A stretch of DNA of 64,000 nucleotides, from assembly GCA_051294905.1 (NCBI GenBank), contig CM119375.1, forward strand, positions 19,468,001 to 19,532,000. The letters are read 5' to 3'. The translations under genes were made by a program, and so were the position numbers. The DNA is from Botryllus schlosseri. Its lineage: Eukaryota. The notes beneath the pieces were generated by a model. It was given only the letters and a program-made list of their open reading frames with translations. It made no database searches and was not told the origin of the DNA. This document shows positions 1,041 through 51,800 of this stretch, one piece after another (within the stretch, counting starts at the first letter, position 1; each line of letters begins with the position of its first letter).

Positions 1041-2585
1041 AAGTCGTTGACCTTTGCAGTTAGGCTTACGCAATCTCTCGAGTTCTAGTCATTGGAATTA
1101 GTCTGGTCAAGTCAAGTGCGAACATGAATCGTATTGAATCTTTGCTCCGTACGTAGGCTAGTTTACGCAGTTGCCTTTAGAGCGAAAATTGAAGGTCTAG
1201 AAGACTACTCCTTGTCGCTTCGACATATTCCTGTCTTTTCATTGTATCGCATTTTTGTGGTGTATTGAACTGATAAAATTGCTAATAAACCAATGATGAT
1301 GATGATAGAAATTGTCCAGTCCATTGATCCAATCGTACGCCGGGTACCTCCGCTTTGGTTGCCTAATGCCTATCACCTGGTCGTAACTCGTAACCACCAG
1401 CTCAGTGGTCGTAACACACCAGGATCGTGTACGAAACACTTTCGGACGGCCTATCGATTTGCGTAATCTCTAACTCTACCATGAAATCATAACGCATGCT
1501 ACTAAGGATGACCTGATAATTGATTCGTGGCATAGGGACGATTCTTAGTTCACGTACATTATGTAAAATAATCCTTTGATTAAAAAAAAATGAATAAAAC
1601 ATTTGTTACCACACTTCAAGTCACGGCTCACCGGCAAACCTCTCGCGGCACCTACGTTAAAATCACTGTTGTCGGGAAATTCATGTGACCATCATATTAA
1701 TGTTACTTTTTTACGTTGGAAAACGCCATTGTGACGTCATGTTGATAAAAGTCGCTCGCAGCCCTTGCCCCACCACCCGATATTGTCACGAGCCGCCACT
1801 GCTCTTACTACTAATAGACATAGGTCATTAATGAAATTTAGGAAGTAGTCAGATACCATAGGGTGCCTTTATTTTATACATGCACTAAGTCGAGTATTCA
1901 AAGACTAGGACTTGCAGTCTTTCTTAATCATTTATTCGACCCAAGCAGCTAAGCTACACTACAAATATTTTAAATTTTGTCAAGTGGGCAGCAGCGTTTG
2001 GTTATAGTTACATCAATTTTACAAAGCAGACGATGTATTTACTTTTAGTTGATATTGAGATTTACTTACACGGGCGACTCTGTGGAACGGCTTAATTCCG
2101 GCTGATAAGAATATGTTGTAATACACGACTCTCCACTCCAACGTCGGCAACCAAGGAAATTTAAACGCTGTACGTTACACATATCCCGGCCGTCAAGCTA
2201 CAGCCGATGAAAATGTTCTTCGAACAATTTTAATTGAAAATTTTTCGTGTAAAATTTTTCAATTGAATTTATAGATAGGTGGACAATTTTTCGATTTGAA
2301 AATGTAGTAAAACGTATTCCATTTAATTGTAAATTAAAATGATAAGAACGGAATATTTCAAAAGCATGCCTCGTTTTTAGGAGCAACCCTGATGTTAATC
2401 GTAAAAGCTGAAAATTGATATTTCTCCTACCCTGATAGAGATATCTAATCATGCGGTACAGAATGCTCAAAGCTGTTTTATTTTTTTCTTCGGTAGTATC
2501 GGTATTAGCAGGTACGTTGTTGTACAATTCTCGAGCTTTTTCGTTTTTTTAGCTATGATTTGATATGAAGTGTCATTCCTTTCAG

Positions 2586-2898
2586 GGCTGAAAAACAGCA
2601 TAAAGTTCGACGGTACTACACTAAAGTTTTATGATGGGCAGCATGATTCAGCAACATTCGGTACTGCAGTTGTGAGTTGCTTTCAGAAAGGCGGAGAACT
2701 AGTCATGCCTAAGTATAAGAAACTGAATGATGCTGTGACTCAAGTCGTTAATGAGTTAGTAAATAAGAACCTCACACAACCATGGATATTTATCGATCAT
2801 TTATTTTCAAGGGGAACCGCGTGGATTGGAGGTGGAGATTTTTTTGGTGAGGGTAATTACGAATGGAACGATGGTGAAAGGCATGAATGGACAAACTG
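2586..2898 (+). CDS. Gene 1 exon 2: N-terminal half of C-type lectin domain 1
   Basis: Acceptor ttcctttcag|GG. Encodes ...AVVSCFQKGGELV...AWIGGGDFFGEGNYEWNDGERHEWTNW with the Trp codon split TG|gt (phase 2). 313 nt. Confidence 0.88.
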
Positions 2899-3238
2899 GT
2901 ATCCTATATTTGAAACAGCCTTTATGCTCTGCATGATTCCAGTTACTGATGTATATAACCCTATACTGAAAATACTATGCTCAGTGCCAGTACCAGTAGG
3001 CTACCTACAAAATATCAGCGTGGGCTTGGGCCGCGATATGGTGGTTATTACGTTATTACTATAGGGACATTGAAACTCTATAAAAGGTTTTTGTTCGTGT
3101 GACCATGGATTTCCGTAAACAGTTCGCTGTGAACATGAACCTATGACATCACCAGGTTTCGCAATGTTAATTCGAATTCAAATCGCTTTCTGAATTCTTG
3201 ACTGCGCTCCTATTAGTTTAGTCTTGACATATTGCAGG

Positions 3239-7736: not shown

Positions 7737-8925
7737 ATTTATTTCTCCTGCATCGAGATGCTTGGACGATGGAGCAGGGTTGGGATGACTCGAGTCATGA
7801 CTTGACTCGAGTCAGACTCGAGTCACCTTTTTTGCATGACTTGACTTGACTCGAGTCACTTTGCTAAAATGACTTGACTTGACTTGACTCGGCGTATCAG
7901 AAATGAGGATTGACTCGTGACTCGGAGCAAAATTCACGAGTTAATTTCAAGTCATCAAGTAATCGGTGTCGATAAGAATCACTGTATCTTGGATATGTTC
8001 CGATTGTTTGCGAAACGCTTGCGTAACCCGTGAGAGCGACCAATCATTCAATGACCGTGCGTTTCACCGAGCTTCGGTTGTTCTCTCACAAATAAATTGA
8101 CCGCAAACGAGGTGATCGAAGCTTACAGCTTAAGTTGTCGTAACTCTAGTAGTAAAGTAATAGAATAACAAAATGTCTATTTCTGTTCTCTGTTAACCAA
8201 ACCTCTTGTTTTATTGAAATTGAAGTCGAAAATAGTTTATATAGTCCATTGGCGCAGGCTGGAATGGTAGCCTGTCATATCTATTTGTAAATGGGTAAAG
8301 TATTGCATCTTATCAATTCGTTTCTATATTCTATATTTTAGCTGGTAACTATGAACTGAGGCTACGCAATTACGTATATGTCAGCGATACAGCGCCTGCT
8401 TGTGTGTATATTTAACTCCATATTCGTTCATCGGTTCGGAATCAATGACCACTCAAACTGTATTTCAGACAGCTAGCAAATTGCAATGATGTAATCATGC
8501 CTCATACATACTTCGAAAAGGCAACTTGACTTGAAATGTGACTTGACTCGTGACTTGACTTGACTTGACTCGACTTGACTCCAGTCACCTCCAAAAATCA
8601 AGTGACTTGACTTGACTCGAGTCACCTTTGAAAATTGATTGACTTGACTTGACTCGAGTCAAAATGTGCAATGACTCGAAATGACTCGTGACTCGAAGGT
8701 AGTGACTTGATCCCAACACTCCGATGGAGATGCGATACCACGTATAAGCAAGGTAATCTAGTCTGTACCACCATATTTTCTCCTCCACTCTATCCGTTGA
8801 TGCTGAGCGCCTAGCGGGATAGCCGCGGATACCAGTTTTCGAGTTTTTTTGTCTAAACCGGTCGGGGATCGAACTCACGACGTACCGATCAATAAGCCGG
8901 ACGTATCACTATGACGCTATCTCGG
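7700..8925 (-). mobile_element. tRNA(Lys)-like SINE family 2 with (TC)n tail, interrupted by a hAT MITE
   Basis: Minus-strand head GATAGCGTCATAGTG...GTCGTGAGTTCGATCCCC near 8865-8920, (GA)n at about 7702-7730. The flanks of the 7775-8721 insertion rejoin into sequence matching 46195-46330 and 41460-41590. Confidence 0.75.
7775..8721. mobile_element. hAT-type non-autonomous element (family A-related)
   Basis: TIR CAGGGTTGGGAT/ATCCCAACACTC, perfect 8-bp TSD CGATGGAG, GACTT/GACTCGAGTC subterminal arrays. Confidence 0.9.
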
Positions 8926-10104: not shown

Positions 10105-10770
10105 GTATGACTGAGTTCGTGTACCGCAAATATCAGACAAATTGCCCAAAAGCAAACACGGTTTTCTAGGTTTGATTTTAGTCACATTTGCTGATCTGCC
10201 GTGGCAGAGCGATGCGAGAAATATGGCTTCGAAAGATGTGAAAACAATATCCCTTCTCGCAGCAGTCGTTTACGTTGATGAAAGATTAATCGCAATCATT
10301 TTTGCTTGATTTTGCTTCCTTGACAGCATATTCAAAGACAATATAATGTTTGGCTCGAGGAAGATTCATGAGATATCGTTTTTTTAAATCGGGATGTTAT
10401 TCGTTTGCAACATCCAAATATAATCTTCATTGACGGCCAACTTCGATTTTGAATAAATTATGGCAAAATCATGATTGCTGGTGCCGGAATAACGAGTTGA
10501 ACCACAACTTGGTCTAATAAAACAAAACGAACACCAACGCTGAAAAGCAACATTATCATTACATGAACCATCGTCTATCTATGTATTCTGGTCCTCTTAC
10601 TTGTGCGAAGAATTTATGATTACGAGATCCGCCATATTAAATTGAATGCATTTTAGAAACCGCTGTTGTTAAGGGTATATAGCGGTCATGGCCATGTGTC
10701 GTATAATAGTGCCTAGTACGCATTTTTCGGAATCTTCTTTCGCAACACATCCATGGAAATTGCTTTCCAG

Positions 10771-11043
10771 TTGCTGCCCATGATTTGTCTGTTTCCGAAG
10801 AACAACCTTTCGTAGAGCCGGGTATTGATCTGAATATCAACTGCTCTGCATTGGGGATTCCAGTTCCGAAGGTTTCCTGGTACCGAGACGGCAGATACGT
10901 ACCGCATCAGAAACACGGACTCGGCAGCTCAACACTAGTGCTCAAGGACATAGGTCCCGATGATTTGGGCATGTATGTGTGTAAAGCTGTGAACGAAGTT
11001 GGAGGACAGCTGAGACGCATGGGAGGATTGTCTTTCGTTGAAA
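10771..11043 (+). CDS. Gene 1 exon 6: immunoglobulin (I-set-like) domain
   Basis: Acceptor tgctttccag|TT. Contains INCSALG..PKVSWYRDG...STLVL...DDLGMYVCKAVNEVG (Cys, Trp and DxGxYxC Ig motifs). Phase 1-1 exon, donor A|GTAAAT. Confidence 0.92.
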
Positions 11044-11149
11044 GTAAATATGTTGCATATACAGCAGTATACATTGACTCAATCCCGTTTCGAAGATCAT
11101 TACTTCTGTTTTTTCTCTCTCTGTCGTTTGTCACTTTTCCTGCACTCTA

Positions 11150-11552
11150 TAGGGTCGGGTTGTAACCAAGTCAGAGGGCATCGAGTCCAAGTCATTGCGT
11201 TGACTGCTCAGTTTCTAGTTAAAGTCCTGTTAAAGCAACTTTTTATAACTCTGTCTGGTGATATCGAATGGTTCGCGTTTGAAATATAATAATTTCCTGA
11301 CTATAACAGTTTCTGGTCGCATTTTCAAGTAGGCCTATACCAGTACCAATAGGCAAAACACCAACAGTGTGGGTATTTTACCATTCATCGAAATTACAGT
11401 GAAATGTCGGTCTTGGCCGTCTGAGACTCGAGTAATATATGACAATCTGTGTATTACTATTAACTCGAGTCGAGTCATTTTAGTATTTTGAGAAAATGCC
11501 TCGAGTCAAGTCGAGTCATAAGAAAATCGCGACTCGAGTCACTACAACCCTG
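11150..11552. mobile_element. hAT-type MITE family A
   Basis: GGGTTGTAACCAAGTCA ... CTACAACCCTG, colinear with 6178-6579 and 30115-30706. Confidence 0.75.
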
Positions 11553-17966: not shown

Positions 17967-19081
17967 TAGGGATGGTGTGAACCTCTAAAAGGTTCAGGTT
18001 CGTGTGAACGCGAACCTTTTTGAAAGGTTCTGTGTGAACACGAACGTGAACCTCATGACGTCACGGGACGTCATATTGCTAATTCCAACCTATCCTTCAA
18101 TGAAATGATAGCCTATATTAATGTACACGATACCTAGCGACGACTCGGGCAACATTACGTCACAATGCTCAAATACATATTGACGTTTTAAACTTCGCCA
18201 AATGTATCAACTGGAGCATTCAAATGATATAATAATCTCATAAAATCAATATCTTCCGTCGCTTTGCCAACAATTTTGACGAGGACTTACCATGGAAAGA
18301 TGGAATATAAGGGAAGGAAGGGACATAGTTTACTTTTGTCCTTGATGTTCTTGCGGCATATACACCGACTCATGATATACATACACACGATCTGCGTATA
18401 TGCATACCATGAATAGGCTACATGATGTGCATATGCCGTCGGGAAACGAAGATGCAGATTATAGCCTTGTAGCAGTGTTAGGAAGACTGAAGTCAGACTC
18501 GGGTCACCTTTGTCGTATGACAGATCGGAAAATGTATTCGGCGTCTGAGTATTGCTACATTGATATTGAGCAGAGTGTAAAACGGGTTTCTATACTTGCT
18601 ACCGATATTACCCCAATAACAAGTTATACGGTAGTAGCCAACAACTTTGGTTTTAATGATCCAGTAAGCATATGAAGGCAAGATTGACCCCATACGCCTC
18701 CTAGATTGATTAGTTGAATAAGCATCATTCGCTGACTAGGTAGCTTATTTCGATCGTGATGTTTTGTGATTGTGGGTCAAGCTCGCAGCAGAGAGTCAAT
18801 AAATATTTACAAACGGAAAGTTGGGTATTTCGAGCAAACTTTTGCAACAAAGCAAGTAAAACTTTTGAGATTGTCAAGGTACATGCTCGTTTAGTGTTGA
18901 TTTTCTATGCCTATAGTGCCATGCATAGGGTGGCCCGCAGTTGAAAGTCGATAAATTTGAACCAACGATGTTGTAATGAAGTTGCAGAACCTACCAAGGT
19001 TCTGTTGTGAACGCGAACCTCTAAATTTTCGAGGTTCACACACAGAACGCGAACGTGAACCTCACGTTCACACCATCCTTA
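17967..19081. mobile_element. hAT-type non-autonomous element family B (GTTCACGTTCGCGTTCAC repeats)
   Basis: TIR TAGGGATGGTGTGAAC/GTTCACACCATCCTTA, TSD GTTACTGG/TTTACTGG (7/8). Other ends of the family at 23191, 24433, 27618, 36408, 44366 and 52421. Confidence 0.85.
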
Positions 19082-37809: not shown

Positions 37810-38183
37810 TCAAGGAAAGCTGATCATGAAGATTGGCATCGTTACCAGCCGATGCAAAGAAGCGAGCTGGATCATTTGCCTTTTCGCTGTCTGCAGGTAT
37901 CGAAAGAATGAGACTCCACTTTTTGAAGCAAAATAGTCATCGTATGATTCTGCAGACTTTTGATACTTTCGAATTCCTGGTGCTCGTTGCCGAACTTTCG
38001 CAAGTCGCCTAATAGTTCCGTTAACTGAATGAGTCTCATCACGATGGCCCATTGATGTCGAAAATTGTTAAGTCTTAATTGCTGACGGATCTTTCTATTT
38101 TCACGTCTTCCGCTTTTCAAGTCTTGAAAGAAACCAAGCGAAAGTGGTCCGGCAGCTAGCGGAAGCTCTACGACGAGCACCAA
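37810..38183 (-). pseudogene. Frameshifted histone-H3-like sequence (copy A)
   Basis: Two overlapping frames (37872-38183 and 37810-38052). Contains IRKYQKSAE at 37948-37974 versus H3 IRRYQKSTE. Paralogue of 46408-46810. Confidence 0.35.
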
Positions 38184-38713
38184 TAAATCGAAACTGTCAA
38201 AAGTCTGGCAAACTTTACGGTGAATGTCTCATAACTCGAAACGCGGAGTCATATTTATTTGTTATAACGTGAGCACATTTCAGGCCTAAATTCTCTATTT
38301 ATATATTATATTAAAGTAGTTTTGAACATGCATAGAAATTGAAAACGCAGAATGTGACGTGTAATTCGGACTATAGAAATACTTTGTATTGTGACATACG
38401 GTCACCTGTCATTGCAGCCTCACCTGATTGATTTTATTAGAAGCGCCTAAATGCAAGAAAATGAAAGAGTGAATTCAGGCGTTTAAACTGTTCTTGTAAC
38501 CAACATTATTCATGTCAGATAGCCTGACATATTCTTTTTAGGAAATCAGTTGCGAACGCGGTATTGTCGCCACATACATACGCTCGATTCAGAGAAATAT
38601 TCAATATATTAGAAACCTACATGTATACCGTTACGATTTATGACGACAAAGTCCTAAACTCAACTGATAACCGTACCTTTCACCTTCCCCATGGCTAGTT
38701 CCATGTGTATATA

Positions 38714-39991
38714 CAGCACCGTAACTGCCGCACCCCAAACCCCCCAATTGGGGGGGGGCCCGAGCTCGAAGGGGGCCCAAAATTATTTCGTGAATTAGCA
38801 TAAATCATAGAGTATTTTTTGAAAATTTATGCAATTTTTTCAGAAATTTTTCGCGCTGCGCGCGAATTTAAGTAGCTATGTGCCTGTATTATTGGGTATT
38901 GGGCCATTACCGCGCCACGACCCACCAAGACATACAAGCAAGTTTTAGGCCATATAACATGCGACTCCAGGAAGTGTGCCAGAACGATCGGCAGCGAGAA
39001 AACCTTGGCCGAAAGGGTCTATGCCCTTATGCTGACCAAAGACTTCGTTATATATACAAATAAATATAGGTTTAATTGTCCATAGGCGCCTAAGTGACTG
39101 GCGCCGAATGTTCCTGTCTTTGCAATCTGAACCTCACAAGACAAATACCATCCCGCTGGGAAAAATGTTATGCCAGTGAAGAAATACCAATTTGAAATCG
39201 TGTGCGTCTCTTAGTTTAGAAGCCTACGTTTGGGCGATTCTATATTTTTTGATATAGCAGACTGGAAGTCACGAAATAACATCATGTAACGAAGTCATAT
39301 CAACGGGTCCGCCCGCCCGAAGATGTTTGATTATTAGTTACGGGGCCTCCCGTTTTCAAGACACTTCACTCAGCTCTACCGGTAAATCTAATTACGTGAG
39401 TAGAGAGGGCAATAAATTGATAGCATAATATATATGCAATCGCCGATCTGATTGACCGATTTTATCATAAATTATCGAAAATTTTCGCGCTTCGCGCAGT
39501 ACAGATGATTTCGTGACAAACGCGAAAAACGTGATGGAGGGGTCGTTTCATCACCCTATGGGACCCAAGACCCACGTTTTTGGGGGCCTGACGAGGTGCT
39601 GTTTCGTCCCTACCAACGGGTATACGCCCGAAGATGTTTAATTTTTATTGAGTGTTCCTACCTTTTCAAACACACCTCACTCAGCTCTACCGGCAAATCC
39701 GATTACGTGAGCAGAGAGAAGATAAAAATTGATAACAATATATATGCAATTCCCGATCATACTGACCGATTTAGTCAGGAATTCTAGAAATTTCCCGCGC
39801 TTCGCGCGCTCAGGCGACAAAAGCTGCTTCACTACACAAACTCCCGACGCACATCATAAATAGCGGTAAACAGGGTATCGCTGGAGGGGGGTCTGGGGGG
39901 CGAAGCCCCCCAGACGTTCGGTCTATAACCCTATGGGGGGCCCACGACCAAAGTTTTGGGGGGGGCCTGGCGAAGTGCTGTTACGGCCCTG
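38714..39991. mobile_element. 1.28-kb non-autonomous hAT element upstream of peptide gene A
   Basis: TIR CAGCACCGTAAC/GTTACGGCCCTG with perfect TSD TGTATATA. The empty site is visible in unit B (about 47395-47410). Confidence 0.92.
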
Positions 39992-40452
39992 TGTATATAT
40001 TACATAACCTGAATCGTCTTGAGTCTCACATTCATTGCTCTTGCTAGCGAAGTTCAGATCAATTTCATGTGATTTTGCTGTAATCTAAGACGTTTTAATG
40101 TCGAAAATGATGATACTTCTGTAATGCTTTTTTTTACTTTCCTAATCTAAAAAGTCCACACCATCGAAACTTTAAATCAGGGTACCGATGGGGCAGCCAT
40201 ATTTTGTTGATGCTTGTGAGTGGTAACCAAAGTTACAATTCTTATTTACTAGGAAAATATTCAGCTTGGGGTCACAATAAAATTGCCACCAAAATGCATT
40301 AGCATCGGTAAGTTTCGGTGGTGAAACGGGGATTTTATCATATGCTATGATTCTGCCAATATCTATTCTGGACGAACAGGCTGTAAAGTCATTACCGAAA
40401 TATGATTCATAAAAAGTCTTCCGACGAAACTCGAAATCTGGGGACAGACGGC

Positions 40453-40512
40453 TATAAATGAGTAGAAGTTCTCACACTCTTGCACGCATTCTGATTGATA
40501 CTGAACGTGAAG
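40453..40512 (+). promoter_or_regulatory. TATA box and non-coding exon 1 of oligo-arginine peptide gene A
   Basis: TATAAA at 40453-40458 and strong donor AG|GTAAGT at 40512/40513. Both are conserved in copy B (47860 and 47919). Confidence 0.75.
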
Positions 40513-40903
40513 GTAAGTCAAGGTAATCGGAATTTTATATATTGTAAATTCCACTGGTATTTAACGGAGGCTCCTTAAATTCCCGTTGACAGTGGGTTGC
40601 CATTTAGGTGCTATCTCGGTCCGACGTCTTTAAGAATTCAATGCTGGCACCAAGTTCCCTTGAATTGAAACGGTTTGAAGACTTTTCATCATGCCGAACT
40701 TCCAGTAGGATTCTGATGCCATAGTTTATACCGATGTTATGTAGCTTATAGGAGTTACGAATACGAAATATGGAAATGGCTTTATAGGTTTTTCGAAAGC
40801 CATCGCCAAGGTGTATGTGTTTCTAGTGGCTTAGCTGGTAAAAACGCTTAATATGCATGCTTAAAGCCTAAACGCCCAGACCATTGCAGCTACTTGATTG
40901 CAG

Positions 40904-41015
40904 ATGAACTCGAAGCTGCTCGTTGCTGTCTTCCTTGTAGTTGCTCTTCTTGTTGTCGAGAACGAAGCTATTTTGGGCCGCCGGCGCCGCCGTCGCAGAC
41001 GCCGTCGACGCGGGG
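40904..41015 (+). CDS. Oligo-arginine peptide precursor A, exon 2: signal peptide + ILG-R11-G
   Basis: Acceptor ttgattgcag|ATG. Encodes MNSKLLVAVFLVVALLVVENEA ILG RRRRRRRRRRR G. Phase-1 donor G|GTGAGC. Confidence 0.9.
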
Positions 41016-41081
41016 GTGAGCGTGTCTTTTCGAAATATCGAGCAGTTTGCCCTTCATTACAAAGGTATATGCTCTTTTAAG

Positions 41082-41170
41082 ATAACGAGATGGATATGAA
41101 CCGTGAGGAGTTGATGGACGGTGACTTCGATGAGAACGAGGTACATATGGCGGATCAGCACCAACAGTAA
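41082..41170 (+). CDS. Oligo-arginine peptide precursor A, exon 3: acidic C-terminal piece
   Basis: 66-nt intron, acceptor ttttaag|AT. Encodes DNEMDMNREELMDGDFDENEVHMADQHQQ-stop. Precursor 66 aa. The exon continues to the donor at 41184. Confidence 0.88.
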
Positions 41171-41266
41171 TGAAACTCATGCTGGTAATTTGTAATAGAC
41201 TCTTTCTCTGCACGTACTGCATTCAGCCACATTATTATCGCTGATTGTATCGCAGATTTATCGAAA

Positions 41267-41590
41267 AGGAAAGGACGTAGTTTATTTTTGTCCTTTGATG
41301 TTTTTTGCGGCATATACACCTACTCATGATACACATACATACGATCTGTGCATATGCATACCATGAGTGCATGATGTGCATATGTCGCCAGACAAGGAAG
41401 TGCAGATATAGCCTTTACGGCTTTCTAAGTCATGCACCACCCCTCCATGCTATCCCAGTAATGCATGAACGCCAACCAGGGAAGTCATGTATACCAGTGT
41501 TACTAATGAGGTTTTGGTATGACCCGGCCGGGGATCGAACCCACGACCTACCGATCAAGAAGCCGGACGCTTCACCATCACGCTATCTTG
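41267..41590 (-). mobile_element. SINE family 2 in intron 3 of peptide gene A
   Basis: tRNA-Lys-like head (GATAGCGTGATGG...CTTCTTGA...GGTCGTGGGTTCGATCCCC), flanked by TCGAAA direct repeats. Absent at the orthologous position of copy B. Confidence 0.85.
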
Positions 41591-41846
41591 TCGAAATCTA
41601 AAGTAATGCGGCATCCAAACCATACGCTGCTGTACGTAGAATCATTTCGTTGTAAAAAGGATTTCTTAGGTCATGTCGCCGTTTACATGTGGTCAGGGTA
41701 CCAATTTATCCTCGATTTCAAATAAAGATAAGGATGATGAAGATTTATATCGTGAATATCTAACATCTTAATCCTATCACCTTTCAGTATTTTCGCTATA
41801 CCTTTATCGTATCTAAAAGGAAATTTGAAGTGACTTTATTTTACAG

Positions 41847-41917
41847 CCGAATGACCAGCCGGAACTGGAAAAGATATCGTTTCCTTCAGTTGAATTGGAA
41901 ATATAATCCTGAATAAA
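41847..41917 (+). other. 3'-UTR exon 4 with polyA signal, peptide gene A
   Basis: Acceptor ttattttacag|CCGAAT and AATAAA at 41912-41917. Paralogous exon at 48788-48854. Confidence 0.7.
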
Positions 41918-42611
41918 TTCACTCATGTATCGGGTTATAATTGTATGTACCACCGGGTAGAAAATATCTACATTTTAGGTTATTTCTTTAGGTTATTTTG
42001 GCTATCTCCAATGCCATTAAACATATAGACTCCTCTACATTATGATCCATTTCCCAATTACAAATTTAATTCACGAACATAGCGTATTAGCCATCCACAT
42101 TACCGATTGTTAGGTAGCTTGATGGCTTTGCTATTAAAATGTAGGCCTCCAGCACAATAACGTAATGTTGCCGCTGAGGAGTTTAAGAATTGGGCTGTAG
42201 AGTCAACTTTATGATATCAATTGTGATGATGAGTTTATGATATCAGCTAGAGTTTGTATGCTCAAATTGTCCGGCAACCAGCTAGATTATTGCTGGCGCG
42301 ATAGCATCACATCACAACACAAATTCCAAATAGTGCACCTCGATTTCACGCCACTATATGGCGACACGAATCTTTAATTGTGACGGAAGAGTTGATTGAT
42401 ATCTTTAAGACTTACAATTGAAAATGTGCGGTCAATATGGCTCTTTTGGAGAAAAAGGTTCCCGACCTCTGGTATAGATGTATGCATGGATATGTAACCA
42501 CGGTGTTTGTGGATGTACGAGGTGCTTTCAATCTGAAATCGTCAACATGATATCCGTAGATTTTCATTGTTATGCAATAATATGTTATCTAACCAAACCA
42601 CAACTTATAAG

Positions 42612-46407: not shown

Positions 46408-46810
46408 TCATTGTGCTGGAAGCCTTATAAGCAAATCTGAATTTGATGAACCCGGACGGGGGTCGTGCACTTCCGGACAAAAAAGATATTTTCCCGGAAG
46501 GCTATAGTGAGTTTGGTCCGTGACAGCACGAGCTCCGGCAGCGAGCTGGATCATTTGCCTTTTCGCTGTCTTCAGGTAGTAAACCGCTGCACGAGTATAT
46601 CGAATGAATAAGACTCCACGTTTTCGAGCCAGGAATGGTTCTGCAGACTTTTGATAGTTTCGAATTCCTGGTGCTCGTAGCAGAACTTCCCCCAGTCCCC
46701 TAGTTTCGGTTACTGATTGAGTCTCATCACGATGGCCCGTTGATGTCGAAAAGCTATGAAGTCTTAATTGCGAACGGATCTCTCCATCTTCATGTCTTCC
46801 GCTTTTGAAG
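46408..46810 (-). other. Open, highly diverged histone-H3-like reading frame (3' part of the 218-codon ORF 46408-47064)
   Basis: IRNYQKSAE vs H3 IRRYQKSTE; LARK vs LIRK; FIRYTRAAVYYLKTAKR vs FQRLVREIAQDFKTDLR (ungapped, 6/17); H..R......D spacing near the C-terminus matches H3 HAKRVTIMPKD. By-eye alignment only. Confidence 0.45.
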
Positions 46811-47859
46811 TCTTGAAAGAAACCAAGCGAAAGTGGTCCGGCGACTGGAGGAAGCTCTACGACGAGCACCAGTAAATCGAAACTGTTAAATGTCTGACGA
46901 ACTGTACGATGAATGTCCGACTTGAAAACGTGGGAGTCGTAGCCTGTTCCTTTTTTTAAACGTGAGCACATTTCATGCCTAAATTTTCTATTTTCACCTG
47001 AAGTAGTTTTGCACATACATAAAAATTGAATACGCTGAATTTGACTACGTGTGATACGGATCATAAAAATAGACTTTGTATTGTGACATACGGTTACCCG
47101 TCATTGCAGCCACACCTGGTTGATTTTGATCAGAAGTTCGTTGACCCAAGAGAATGCAAGAGCGAATTCAGGCATTCAAACTGTTCTTGTAGCCAACATT
47201 ATGCATGTCAGATAGCCTGACACCAACTTTTATAAAAATCAGTTGCGATTGCGGTATTGTCGCCTCATGCATACGCCCGATTAAAAATATATTCAATATT
47301 GTATAAACCTACATGTATGCCGTTACGATTTGTGACGTCGCACTCCTAAACTCAACTGGTGACTGTGCCTTTCACATTTCCCCTGGCTATAGTTCCATAT
47401 GTGTATATTACACAACCTGAATCGTCTTGCGTCTCTCATTCATTGCTCTTGCTGGCGAAGTCCAGATCAATTTCTGGTGATTTTGCTGTAAACTAATACG
47501 TTTTAACGTAGAAAATGATGATACTTCCGTATTGATTTTTTTTCTTTCCTAATCTAAAAAGTTCACAACATCGTAACTTTAAATCAGGGTTCCGCTTGGG
47601 CAGTCATATTTTGTGGATGGTTGTGAGTGGTAATCAAAGTTAGAATTCCTATTTACTAGGAATATATCCAACTTGCAGCCACAATAAAATTGTCACCAAA
47701 ATGCATTAGTATCGGTAATTATCGGCGGTGAAACAGGGATTTTATCATAAGCCATGATTCTGCGAATATCTATTCTGGACGAACAGGCTGTAAAGTCATT
47801 ACCGAAATATGATTCATAAAAAGTCTTCCGACGAAACTCGAAATCTCGGGACCGACGGC

Positions 47860-47919
47860 TATAAATGAGTGAAAGTTTTGGCACTCTTGCACGCATTCTG
47901 ATTGATACTAAACGTGAAG
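47860..47919 (+). promoter_or_regulatory. TATA box and non-coding exon 1 of oligo-arginine peptide gene B
   Basis: TATAAA at 47860-47865 and donor AG|GTAAGT at 47919/47920. Confidence 0.75.
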
Positions 47920-48186
47920 GTAAGTCAAGCTAATCAGAATTATATTACAAATTCTACTGGTATTTATGTTCCTGTATAGTAGGATTCTGATGTCATAGTT
48001 CATAATGACGCTATGTAGCTTATAGAGCTTACGAATAGGAATTATGAAAATGGCCTAACTGGTTTTTCAAAATCCATCGACAAGGTGTGGGCTATGCATG
48101 TGTTTCTAGTGGCTAATCCAGCGAAAACGCTTCATATACCTACTGAAACCCTAAACGCCCAAACTACTGCAGCTCTTTGATCGCAG

Positions 48187-48301
48187 ATGAACTCGAAGCT
48201 GCTCGTTGCTGTCTTTCTTGTAGTTGCTCTGCTTGTTGTCGAGAATGAAGCTATTTTTGGCCGCCGACGCCGCCGCCGTCGCAGACGCCGTCGACGTGGA
48301 G
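48187..48301 (+). CDS. Oligo-arginine peptide precursor B, exon 2: signal peptide + IFG-R12-G
   Basis: Acceptor ttgatcgcag|ATG. Encodes MNSKLLVAVFLVVALLVVENEA IFG R12 G. Donor G|GTGAGC. Confidence 0.9.
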
Positions 48302-48371
48302 GTGAGCGTTCATCTTCGAAATAGCTACCATGCAGTATATCTTTCATTACAAAAGTATATGTCATGTTAAG

Positions 48372-48463
48372 ATAACGAAATGAATATGCATCACGAGGAG
48401 TTGATGGATGGTGACGTCGATGAGAACGAGGCAATGATGGAGGATCAGCACAATCAGCAGTAA
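48372..48463 (+). CDS. Oligo-arginine peptide precursor B, exon 3: acidic C-terminal piece
   Basis: 70-nt intron. Encodes DNEMNMHHEELMDGDVDENEAMMEDQHNQQ-stop. Precursor 68 aa. Donor at 48474. Confidence 0.88.
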
Positions 48464-48787
48464 AACTCATGCCGGTAATTTATAATTATCTCTTGCTCTG
48501 CACCCTGCACGTACTGCATTCTGACACATTATTATCTGTTTTCACTGAAATGAAATCACTGATTGTATCGCAGATTTATCCAAATCTATAACTATGCGTT
48601 CGTCCCCTTTTACATCTGGTCATGGACCAATTTATCCTACATTTCCAATTAGTATGAGGATGATGCAGTTTTATATTTTGGACATCTAAATAATAATATA
48701 TCTTAACACCGTCATCCTATCACCTCTTAATATTTTCGCTACCTTTATCTTAACTAAAAGGAAACTTAAATGGTTTTCATTTTTCAG

Positions 48788-48854
48788 CCGAATAAAGATC
48801 CGGAATTGGAAAGATGTTTACTTCAGTTGAATTGTAGCTATAATCCGGAATAAA
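48788..48854 (+). other. 3'-UTR exon 4 with polyA signals, peptide gene B
   Basis: Acceptor tttttcag|CCGAAT, AATAAA at 48791-48796 and 48849-48854. Confidence 0.7.
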
Positions 48855-51800
48855 TTCGCTCATGTAGGCTATCGGTGTGTAATTTTATGTACCCTTGGGC
48901 TAGGAATATGTACATTTCAGGTTGTTTATTTGAGGTTGCAATGATTATGAACTATCTCCAATAGTGTCATGTACCCTTGGGCTGGAAATATTTACATTTC
49001 AGCTTGTTTCTTTGAGGTTGCAGTGATTATGAACTATCTGCAATACCATTAAACTTATACGCTCCTCTATATTATGATCCTACCGATCATTTACTTAACA
49101 CGATTACACCGAACCGAAAGGCCTTTGACAATTCTCACTGGGGAACATATTTATTATCGCAAAGTCCTATACAATTAGTAACTTGGACTAAAATAGCGGT
49201 TCATAACTCGTAGGTTGCGACCTAAATGGGAGTCAGAACGTCACCTAAGCAGTTATCAACGCCGTTCAGGTTTCCGACACAGTATTTGCTATTTTATGCC
49301 GGAATGAACTTCAAACCACGTGGCATGTATTTGAAAACAATACACCATGTCAACAACGGTACTGAAATCTAGACCTAATTGCATCTCAGGCAGCTCCGTT
49401 CAGCGATTCATTACGATCTCGGTACACCCCCCCCCCCCACCACCCCCCCCCCAATAACGCTTAGCAAATTACTTATCCTCTAAATAACTCCAAGTAATGG
49501 GACGAGCATGTGATCGAGTGTCGGGTTTTCATACCTTGACGTAGGTTTTCCATTCGGGTTTCTTGGCTTCGATCCCAAAGGTAAAAGTAGAACCAAAACG
49601 AATAGAAACGGCCTTACGGCGCATTGAGTGCTGTCAATACGATGTTGCAAAAATTAGACGAATAGCCATGGCTCTCTCTCTGATCTAACGCCCATAAAGT
49701 ATTTTGAGTTTGCGAAGCTCCTGCGATGCAGACATTTGGCTGCTAATCATTGGTGGGGATGTCATCATCGATTCACATCCAAGTCCTTCGCCGTTCCAAG
49801 TCTTGAAGACGCGTGATTTCATTAGAGTTCATATGCATTCTACTAAATGGTAGAGTAGCAACTGGTAGAGAATTGAAAAGGACATGCCATATCAACAATC
49901 TTATGGCAAAATATGACGTCACCGCGATACGTTTGTTGAAAGACAGCAGTAGTTCTTCACCTTCGCACCAGCGCCTCTCAGGGGACGATTTGGATTTTGA
50001 AGATTGCAGAAACTCTCAAAGAGCGATATGGGGGCCATCGGAGCGCTGAACGAAATTGGCGTAGCAGTATAGATGGTGTAGTAGTTCTCAAGTGGAAATG
50101 TAGTTCTGTATAGCATAGCTAAATTTCTACATGTAGCTTACCTGAGCTCTTGCTGCAAATTGACTTCTGATCCAATTTAGCAAACCACCAAACTTTTCGT
50201 CGAGCTACGTGGTAAATTTACCAGGGATGTATGCAACGTATTTTTCAAACAAAGTTGGTATCTCGCGCAAAATCAGTATCACGTCAGTGAAACCATGCAA
50301 ATCCTATATGATATGCTCAATGAATAAAGGCAAACATAGATGTTTTATCTATGGTTACCATATTTTTGCAAGACAAATTCCGGGCGCTCTTTGGCTCCTA
50401 CTAGTGGGTTTTAAAATGAGGTATAAGTACATTGTCGATCATTATGACGTTTCACCAGCGAAGCTTTGTCTATCGAGTAGAGGTGGTCACGATCCGGTTC
50501 AGCAGTATATGGCTGCGTGTGTTGTAAGTTGTAACCAGGGTTGAAGCCACATTTTTAGCCCCCTGCCGCGCAAATAAACACAAATTTTAGGCCCACTGTA
50601 GGGTAATCGATGCAACTTCTGGAGGCTTACTATATGTATCCATTCGTTAAATGATTTGAATGAATTATGTCATTATTATTGGTTCTTCCATATATTACTA
50701 TATCATTTTTATCCTCTCTCCGCCCACATGATCACAGTCAGTGTTAGAGCTGGTGGAGGATCTCTTCGAAAATGCAAGGAGCGTAATTGTACATCGTTAA
50801 GTCATGGTCATGTCACATCGATAAGATTATTTATCAGCATAATGCCGGTGCGCACTGCACCACTGAGCTATTTAAACTCCGCACATCCGGTGGTCTGCAA
50901 CCTTTTATGGTCGCGACTCAATGTTCAATTTGCCGAGGCCAGCTCCAAATTTGAGAAGCTGATTACTAATTAAAGGTCGGCACATTAGCCCACACTTACT
51001 CACGGCCTATTTTGGAGGATGATTACGTTCAACATCTTCGCGGAACCCAGAATGAAAACTACCCCCAGAACCACTATCTTTGAAAAGAGTATCCAAACGG
51101 TTTAAGCCGACTCTGTGAATGTACCGTTGTATTGTAATTGCGATTACAATTATACTTATTTCTGTAAATGATTGCTATTTTTAATTATTTTTGATCGCAG
51201 TTTTTGAGAGGGTGGTAGTTCCCATATTAAAAATAATACAAGTGATATTAATTGGTGCGCAGCGCGTAGGTAGGTCGCTACTAGTACATACACGTTCGAC
51301 TTCGATAACGGAATTGATGCAGTAATCATTGTATGACAAACCGGAAAATTTGCACAGTGTATGACAGGGGTCGACAACCTTTTGATGGTCACGGGCCAGA
51401 CATCGAGTGTACAACGATTTGGCGGGACGGACATTTCATTTGTATTATAATTCACACTCACTTAAGTAGGCTATATTACGCTACATTGCTCTAATCTCAA
51501 TCACACCAATCACAAAAAAAGCAAAATATATGTAGTCACACTTCAACAATACCGCATTAATGTGATACTTGATGTTGCTTGCTTTGTGAAAGTTTTTAGC
51601 ATCTAGTAACCAGTCAGATTAAGCAACAAACAAAACATTTTCTAAGTGGGCGTCGGGAATGCATGATCTTAGCTTGCTCTACATGAATATTAAAGTTGAA
51701 AACATTTGTTCACAAACATAGTTGCAATTTACGTTGCATTGCTGGTCAAGCTGGAATAAAGACCACTTTCTTTGAGTAGAAGTCAAGCAGCGATACGCCC

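Follow-up and report, generated by a model that had tools for sequence, protein, structure and literature searches.

The neutralization of cationic peptides by anionic propieces of 15–30 residues is an established principle among host-defence precursors (PMC10608444). A pair of tandem four-exon genes, copies A and B, in a stretch of 64 000 nucleotides from Botryllus schlosseri (assembly GCA_051294905.1, contig CM119375.1, positions 19 468 001–19 532 000 of the forward strand; this whole stretch is called the window and is numbered from its first letter) is predicted to encode small precursors of this general kind, each with a signal-like N-terminus, a run of 11 (copy A) or 12 (copy B) arginines and a neutralizing acidic tail of 29–30 residues, within the propiece length given above. 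Judged by analogy of layout, the closest documented analogue is the myticalin-type cationic-peptide precursor of mytilid mussels (myticalins and modiocalins), a family of linear cationic antimicrobial peptides.

In the myticalins (PMC5577615), as in copies A and B, the signal is followed directly by a cationic Arg-rich region and then by an Asp/Glu-rich anionic extension. The gene layouts also agree: exon 1 is short and consists of 5′ untranslated region (UTR) only; the first intron, a few hundred nucleotides long, runs up to the ATG; the signal, the cationic region and the opening residue or residues of the extension are all encoded in exon 2; and after a phase-1 intron comes an exon for the remainder of the extension. 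In both systems the signal is more conserved than the remainder and ends in an acidic c-region (E-x-E-G/A); compared by its published consensus (MKGXXLLLLTIXXALCMIXECEG), the myticalin signal shows a compositional likeness only (…AL..[IV].E.E[GA]). The myticalin cationic region spans 23–42 residues rich in Pro, Arg, Tyr and Trp, whereas that of copies A and B spans 14–15 residues, has no Pro and is nearly an Arg homopolymer. A distinct Lys-Arg site, in many cases with Gly before it, is found in the myticalins and is absent from copies A and B; the myticalin extension is 35–75 residues long, as against 29–30, and the myticalin genes have three exons, whereas copies A and B have an additional intron in the 3′ UTR. 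The family is reported to be restricted to Mytiloida (PMC5577615). Because no sequence similarity was detected in word-based and HMMER searches, the cationic region is short and free of Pro, the Lys-Arg site is missing and the tail is shorter, the sequences do not support membership of copies A and B in the myticalin family.

In the ascidian Styela clava, haemocytes contain the clavanins and styelins, peptides with a C-terminal amide (PMC10608444); the mature peptides are amphipathic helices of 23–32 residues, rich in His or Phe, in contrast to the Arg run of copies A and B. Polyarginine is classed in reviews as a synthetic type of cell-penetrating peptide, and engineered constructs exist in which an attached polyanion masks the polycation up to a triggering event, in one example a pH trigger (PMC7251059). 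The Arg runs of copies A and B fall in the same length range as the synthetic R8–R12 cell-penetrating peptides, and both copies share with activatable cell-penetrating peptides the arrangement of a cation block, a junction (Gly in copies A and B) and an anion block of equal charge. The original activatable design was a protease-cleaved polyGlu-linker-polyArg. Synthetic oligo-arginines are man-made, whereas the present layout is gene-encoded with a predicted secretion signal and is conserved in two paralogues. Protamines and protamine-like sperm proteins likewise have long uninterrupted Arg runs with mixed CGN/AGR codons; protamines are nuclear DNA-condensing proteins, expressed in spermatids, with neither a signal peptide nor a charge-matched acidic block, whereas copies A and B have a hydrophobic signal-like N-terminus and do not fit the protamine definition. 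The run also matches the multibasic furin motif R-X-[KR]-R many times over; natural convertase cleavage sites use about 4–6 basic residues, compared with 11–12 here.

Searches for relatives of the products were negative. The 66-residue product of copy A had no candidate among 5.8 billion protein clusters in a word-indexed search, and the exon-2 translation gave two HMMER matches among 1.84 billion representatives, both translated repeats. Look-ups of the 66-residue, 68-residue and unspliced 58-residue products found no exact record, two pattern scans of metagenome DNA gave 0 matches, no Pfam family scored above threshold (best E ∼0.06–0.08, HemY_N and Fungus-induced), and Rfam and tRNA scans of the window returned nothing. 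Queries of the published literature with motif strings and with a 10-Arg run plus precursor terms retrieved 0 papers. The neighbours found with a protein language model were small secreted precursors (apelin, Toddler, frog-skin peptides and pleurocidin), with weak scores that make them leads only. An earlier note on this DNA, made from the sequence alone, had known of no secreted peptide whose mature region is essentially an Arg homopolymer, and the searches of protein collections, Pfam families and published papers brought up none either. The pairing of an Arg homopolymer with an acidic block of matching charge has no described counterpart; the kind of precursor is known, and the predicted mature region would be a new form of it. 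Charge masking is a role that anionic propieces have in other cationic host-defence precursors, and the reading that we tentatively favor is that of a secreted oligo-arginine kept inert by its charge-matched acidic propiece and freed by cleavage at the Arg/Gly boundary.

Gene structure and transcription of copy A

The earlier note had described a gene of four exons with a TATA box, a noncoding exon 1, canonical splice sites and a polyadenylation signal, all of which are present where it had placed them. The features of copy A are as follows.

40453–41925, + strand: copy A gene, read directly from the sequence; four exons, GT..AG introns, TATA box and AATAAA
40358–40439, + strand: proximal promoter block of 82 nt, about −95 to −14 from the TATA box; the longest run identical in copies A and B
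40453–40459, + strand: TATA box TATAAAT, read directly; kept in copy B at 47860
40475–40512, + strand: noncoding exon 1 (5′ UTR), start approximate; donor GTAAGT after 40512
40904–41015, + strand: exon 2; by translation, the first three bases are the ATG
40904–40969, + strand: exon 2, part 1; 22-residue signal-like segment with n-region MNSK, a 14-residue hydrophobic core and c-region ENEA
40970–41015, + strand: exon 2, part 2; Ile-Leu-Gly, 11 Arg (40979–41011), Gly37 and the first base of the Asp38 codon
41016–41081, + strand: intron 2, 66 nt, phase 1, GT..AG
41082–41184, + strand: exon 3; 29-residue acidic tail (net −10), TAA at 41168–41170 and 14 nt of 3′ UTR
41185–41846, + strand: intron 3, 662 nt, inside the 3′ UTR, 14 nt past the stop
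41847–41925, + strand: exon 4; remaining 3′ UTR, AATAAA at 41912–41917, transcript end near 41925

The start that the earlier note gave to the locus, 40453, is that of the TATA box and not of exon 1; transcription probably starts near 40475–40488, which would make exon 1 about 25–38 nt long. Exon 1 has no ATG, and copy B shares its block 40475–40502 (28 nt) without a difference. The last bases of intron 1 are ...TTGCAG, with the ATG (40904) immediately after them, and splicing of exon 1 to exon 2 would place a purine at −3 of the ATG. The spliced product has 66 residues, and its translation agrees with the precursor proposed earlier: a 22-residue signal-like segment (MNSKLLVAVFLVVALLVVENEA) ending in ENEA, ILG, 11 Arg, Gly and the 29-residue acidic tail. 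The run mixes five Arg codons, with CGC used six times, CGT twice and CGG, CGA and AGA once each. The tail is Met-rich with a conserved core, EELMDGD-x-DENE, and an in-frame TGA follows the TAA stop in exon 3. Only 14 nt separate the stop from the last exon junction, and under the roughly 50-nt rule known from vertebrates a 3′ UTR intron so close to the stop is not expected to elicit nonsense-mediated decay. The mRNA would measure about 320 nt.

The layout of n-, h- and c-regions in the N-terminus of copy A and its hydropathy (Kyte–Doolittle 9-mer means of up to 3.6) would fit a cleavable signal peptide, but the Arg cluster downstream is unfavorable for translocation. A filter for hydrophobic N-termini was passed by five ATG-initiated open reading frames (ORFs) of at least 28 codons on both strands of the window, two of which are copies A and B. 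The segment could instead be an uncleaved reverse signal anchor with its N-terminus outside, giving a 66-residue membrane microprotein with a cytosolic polybasic stretch and acidic tail. The C-terminal flank (+6 within 15 residues) is indeed more positive than the N-terminal flank (+2), as the positive-inside rule would have it, and there is a weak, sub-threshold Pfam match to a transmembrane-plus-juxtamembrane model (EphA2_TM, E = 0.09). However, the 14-residue core between Lys4 and Glu19 suits a signal peptide and is short for a membrane span, the c-region ends in small residues that fit a signal-peptidase site and the myticalin precursors also place strongly cationic peptides right after the signal (PMC5577615). 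We consider such an anchor very improbable.

Coverage in RNA was checked in X1, X2, X8 and X23, of which three are probable RNA runs in contig form and one is an RNA-seq run of raw reads. A 193-nt contig from X1 (depth 2.9) covers exon 3 exactly, with no mismatch, and then 41846–41925; its joint, from 41183/4 to 41846/7, skips 662 nt bounded by GT..AG. The contig ends at 41925, 8 nt past AATAAA, with seven further letters unaligned. Three unaligned letters at its 5′ end differ from the TAA of the intron, as they would if exon 2 were spliced on there. At least the 3′ half of copy A thus occurs as spliced RNA that ends at a poly(A) site. This contig contains one of the three junctions that the earlier note had proposed to check (41184–41847); the other two (40512–40904 and 41015–41082) were not directly seen and are predicted from sequence signals and paralogue conservation. 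In the same four runs exon 1 has zero depth, save for slight coverage of its bin in X23.

A search with exon-2 words found 0.9 of the words in X25 and 0.5 in X26, both of unknown kind, and 0.5 in X20, which carries a second organism label. X25 and X26 are not among the runs that hold the full 1.6-kb genomic stretch, so that they probably carry exon 2 without introns, as cDNA rather than genomic DNA would. Most matches of RNA runs to the locus stem from two repeats: a repeat in intron 3 that resembles a short interspersed nuclear element (SINE), with depths of hundreds to tens of thousands in X1, X2, X8 and X23, and a repeat at 39900–40060 with very high RNA-contig depth, up to about 7000 in X2.

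The second copy and purifying selection

A six-frame scan for Arg runs identified a second such gene, paralogue B, 7.3 kb downstream of copy A. Its features are as follows.

47860–48862, + strand: paralogue B, with the same four-exon layout as copy A
47860, + strand: TATA box
Ends at 47919, + strand: exon 1
48187–48301, + strand: exon 2
Between exons 2 and 3, + strand: intron 2, 70 nt; intron 2 of copy A is 76% identical
48372–48474, + strand: exon 3, with TAA at 48461–48463
From 48788, + strand: exon 4, with AATAAA at 48849–48854

The product of copy B has 68 residues: a signal identical to that of copy A, IFG, 12 Arg, Gly and a 30-residue tail (net −11). No further gene copies were found in the 64-kb window by tblastn or blastn, and the only Arg runs of at least five residues in its six frames are those of copies A and B and their antisense readings. 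From base composition, 2.5 × 10−8 runs of at least 11 Arg are expected in the six frames of the window, so that the run is not explicable by chance.

The copies were compared by feature-by-feature alignment, with Nei–Gojobori counts and one-sided Fisher tests. The identities between copies A and B are as follows.

Exon 2: 93.8%
Introns: 76–82%
Exon 3, coding part: 81%
TATA box and exon 1: 90%
Proximal promoter: 92–96%, with an 82-nt identical block at 40358–40439 (A) and 47765–47846 (B)

For exon 2 the ratio of nonsynonymous to synonymous divergence (dN/dS) is 0.05, with one nonsynonymous and seven synonymous changes (Fisher p = 6 × 10−4); for the acidic tail it is 0.17 (8.8 nonsynonymous and 5.2 synonymous changes; p = 0.014) and for the coding sequence overall 0.19 (p = 3 × 10−4). 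Within exon 2, the signal-like segment has no nonsynonymous and three synonymous changes, and the second part has four synonymous changes and one conservative replacement (Leu to Phe), with the run longer by one Arg codon in copy B. The Arg codons have zero nonsynonymous changes despite the 10 CpGs in the block. The tail has eight changed residues and a single-residue indel, yet it is still strongly acidic. At the level of sequence, these counts show both copies to be under purifying selection. Synonymous divergence (∼0.26–0.36) is in line with that of the introns, and the duplication is therefore old, with both reading frames retained. Gene conversion was rejected as the source of the exon-2 identity in favor of selection, because identity drops right outside exon 2, at the exon borders; the remaining differences are almost all synonymous.

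The cationic block followed by an anionic tail, as described in the earlier note, is matched in charge in both copies, with Arg-block and tail charges of +11 and −10 in copy A and +12 and −11 in copy B. That the Arg count and the tail charge vary together in the two sequences is suggestive.

The locus pair could also be young and lineage-restricted, with little or no function, its Arg run derived from an exonized (CGN)n repeat and its transcription at noise level. No homologues were found in any search, coverage in RNA runs is very low and the difference of one Arg codon between the copies is a typical slippage change. On the other hand, with synonymous divergence at about 0.3, the signature of purifying selection reaches significance; TATA box, splice sites, poly(A) signal and reading frame have stayed intact in both copies, and the promoters share the 82-nt identical block. 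Five Arg codons are used in a mixed order that is common to both copies; the run therefore predates the duplication, and a recent microsatellite origin was rejected. Tandem Repeats Finder reported only a weak 20-nt match of period 9 on the Arg run and no period-3 array. A young origin of this kind is accordingly hard to credit.

Retention of intron 2 as coding sequence was also rejected: the read-throughs differ between the copies, with intron lengths of 66 and 70 nt, and that of copy B stops early. The antisense ORFs over the Arg exon (40968–41222 and 48132–48470, minus strand) were rejected as well, since they lie in different frames in the two copies and are unrelated in sequence. An ORF of 218 residues on the minus strand (46408–47064), in the duplicated upstream block, has no Pfam match and is disrupted in copy A; it is unlikely to be a gene.

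The tandem duplication reaches about 2.5 kb upstream of both genes (37944–38697 and 46635–47389). The upstream block of copy A contains a specific insertion of about 1.3 kb (38700–39986) with two 80%-identical units about 310 nt apart (39314–39497 and 39625–39807), and at the repeat at 39900–40060 the identity between the aligned copies drops to 61%. Just past the poly(A) site of copy B, at 48880–49043, are two tandem 82-nt units that are 88% identical. The SINE-like repeat of intron 3 (41266–41593) is present in copy A only and was therefore inserted after the duplication; related pieces occur at 18314–18468 and 8846–8922, and its 3′ part looks tRNA-derived (minus strand), although ARAGORN calls no tRNA there. 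In the promoter of copy A, 40329–40343 (GGGGATTTTATCA) resembles a κB-like site overlapping a GATA site; the counterpart in copy B, at 47736–47750 (AGGGATTTTATCA), keeps the motif in part. With this partial conservation, the motif was set aside as a weak lead to a regulatory site.

Processing and possible roles of the product

In the masked oligo-arginine reading, the 22-residue N-terminus would bring the chain into the endoplasmic reticulum and be cut off after Ala22 or Gly25. The remaining ∼44 residues would form a two-block polyampholyte in which the acidic C-terminal block neutralizes the Arg block, and this masking would prevent the chain from sticking to membranes, sulfated glycans and convertase active sites during export. 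A furin-type convertase or another protease would then cut at the Arg/Gly-Asp boundary, where the R-X-R-R followed by Gly at the end of the run fits the convertase consensus as a predicted cleavage site. Cleavage would free the oligo-arginine with a short hydrophobic cap (Ile-Leu-Gly or Ile-Phe-Gly), and the freed polycation could bind polyanions such as microbial envelopes, nucleic acids and cell-surface glycans. The likeliest role is that of an effector directed at membranes or polyanions, in host defence or otherwise; the freed Arg peptide could act on microbial or foreign eukaryotic cells through polyanion binding or membrane entry.

Several observations weigh against this reading. According to the positive-inside rule, a cluster of 11 Arg right after a 14-residue hydrophobic core hinders translocation. 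If a convertase and carboxypeptidase E/D act in the standard way, an exposed Arg run should be trimmed off; the run can therefore survive only if it is shielded, perhaps by the acidic tail, or if some other protease makes the cut. The charge match is based on two sequences only. In X1, X2, X8 and X23 the Arg exon (exon 2) has zero depth and the exon 2–exon 3 junction is absent from reads and contigs, and exon contigs occur in one of 18 probable RNA runs, so that expression is low or restricted; an mRNA of such small size is also less readily captured by standard libraries. Plain R12 inhibits bacteria weakly, with minimal inhibitory concentrations of 0.6–0.9 mM (PMC11336422); antifungal activity needs at least 11 Arg according to work cited in the same source.

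The earlier note had predicted a mature ILG-R11-amide with Gly37 as the amide donor, which the canonical route does not support. In that route, a cut at a basic site after Gly is followed by carboxypeptidase trimming and then by the action of PAM. Gly37 is followed by Asp-Asn-Glu with no basic site, so that it would not be exposed; the canonical amidation signal is instead Gly25 followed by Arg-Arg (Ile-Leu-Gly-Arg-Arg), the only glycine that fits, and its use would give Ile-Leu-amide. The clavanin and styelin precursors, in which the cationic peptide is followed by Gly and an anionic extension without a basic pair, would be the only precedent for amidation at Gly-Asp. The need for a basic site after Gly has also been applied to the myticalins (PMC5577615). 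By the −3/−1 rule, a signal-peptidase cut after Gly25 (Ile at −3, Gly at −1) appears as plausible as one after Ala22, and the hydrophobic cap would then be lost.

The same basic residues could serve another end: the Arg run may be an oversized multibasic processing or sorting spacer, with the 29–30-residue acidic Met-rich peptide as the lasting product. Convertases would cut in or after the run and carboxypeptidase E/D would strip the Arg residues, leaving at most Ile-Leu-amide or Ile-Phe-amide besides. R-X-[KR]-R is satisfied at every position from the fourth Arg on, Gly25-Arg-Arg is a canonical amidation signal whereas Gly37-Asp is not, and the tail with its conserved core is itself under purifying selection. 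However, four basic residues suffice for cleavage, yet 11–12 Arg have been kept with synonymous changes only; the run length follows the tail charge; and the tail has diverged more quickly than the Arg exon (81% versus 94% identity), the opposite of what activity in the tail alone would lead one to expect. We regard a spacer as unlikely on balance.

The near-zero net charge of both copies, with opposite charges in two blocks and no dedicated cleavage motif after Gly37, would also fit a chain of ∼44 residues that stays uncleaved and acts as a self-associating or coacervating block polyampholyte, as a packaging, adhesive, matrix or mineral-interacting component. The chain would be very short for a structural material, though, and it has no repeats and no Ser, Tyr or Cys for cross-linking or phosphorylation; its RNA abundance is low, whereas structural secretions are usually highly expressed. 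Such a use appears improbable.

A product that enters the convertase pathway, as this one would if its signal segment works, might also act there, as an endogenous inhibitor or regulator of furin-type convertases with its Arg run in the acidic substrate cleft. Vertebrate PC1/3 and PC2 are regulated by small secretory-pathway proteins. Polyarginines inhibit furin, PC5/6, PACE4 and PC7 at nanomolar levels, with Ki values of 1.3 nM for nona-D-arginine and 106 nM for hexa-D-arginine (PMC4482483). These nanomolar values, however, come from D-peptides, and L-Arg runs are also substrates; nothing ties the gene to a convertase, and an inhibitor of this kind would be masked by its own acidic tail. HMMER and Pfam gave no resemblance to known convertase-binding proteins, and no natural polyarginine convertase inhibitor is described in the literature found. 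An inhibitory role is thus most improbable.

The masked oligo-arginine reading has a wider form, in which copies A and B represent a selected animal gene for a secreted, capped R11 or R12 that is held inert by an equal-charge acidic block until proteolysis, a natural counterpart of the polyarginine cell-penetrating peptides and of their activatable form. Taken as a whole, this proposal is possible but doubtful.

Elsewhere in the window, an exon-like ORF at 10710–11162 (+ strand) contains a clear immunoglobulin domain (Ig_3, E = 5 × 10−13) and an ORF at 2564–3061 (+ strand) has a C-type lectin match (E = 8 × 10−4) that is below the Pfam cutoff; these are the only recognizable protein domains that were found in the window. 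The GC content is about 40% throughout and the observed/expected CpG ratio of the whole window is 1.07, with no CpG depletion.

Polyarginine is a workhorse of drug delivery and is classed as synthetic (PMC7251059). If the masked oligo-arginine reading is true, evolution would have arrived at the solution of the chemists, down to the masking of charge by an attached polyanion, and the two genes would provide a natural system for how cells make, transport and unmask a sticky polycation. Their length of 11–12 Arg lies at the threshold reported for the antifungal activity of oligo-arginines (in work cited in PMC11336422), which gives a concrete hypothesis. As the earlier note observed, six-frame annotation misses the gene, and since routine annotation likewise misses an mRNA of this size that encodes 66 residues in a sequence split by a 66-nt intron, similar genes may be overlooked elsewhere. 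A true masked oligo-arginine would also extend the sequence range of host-defence or effector peptides to a homopolymer.

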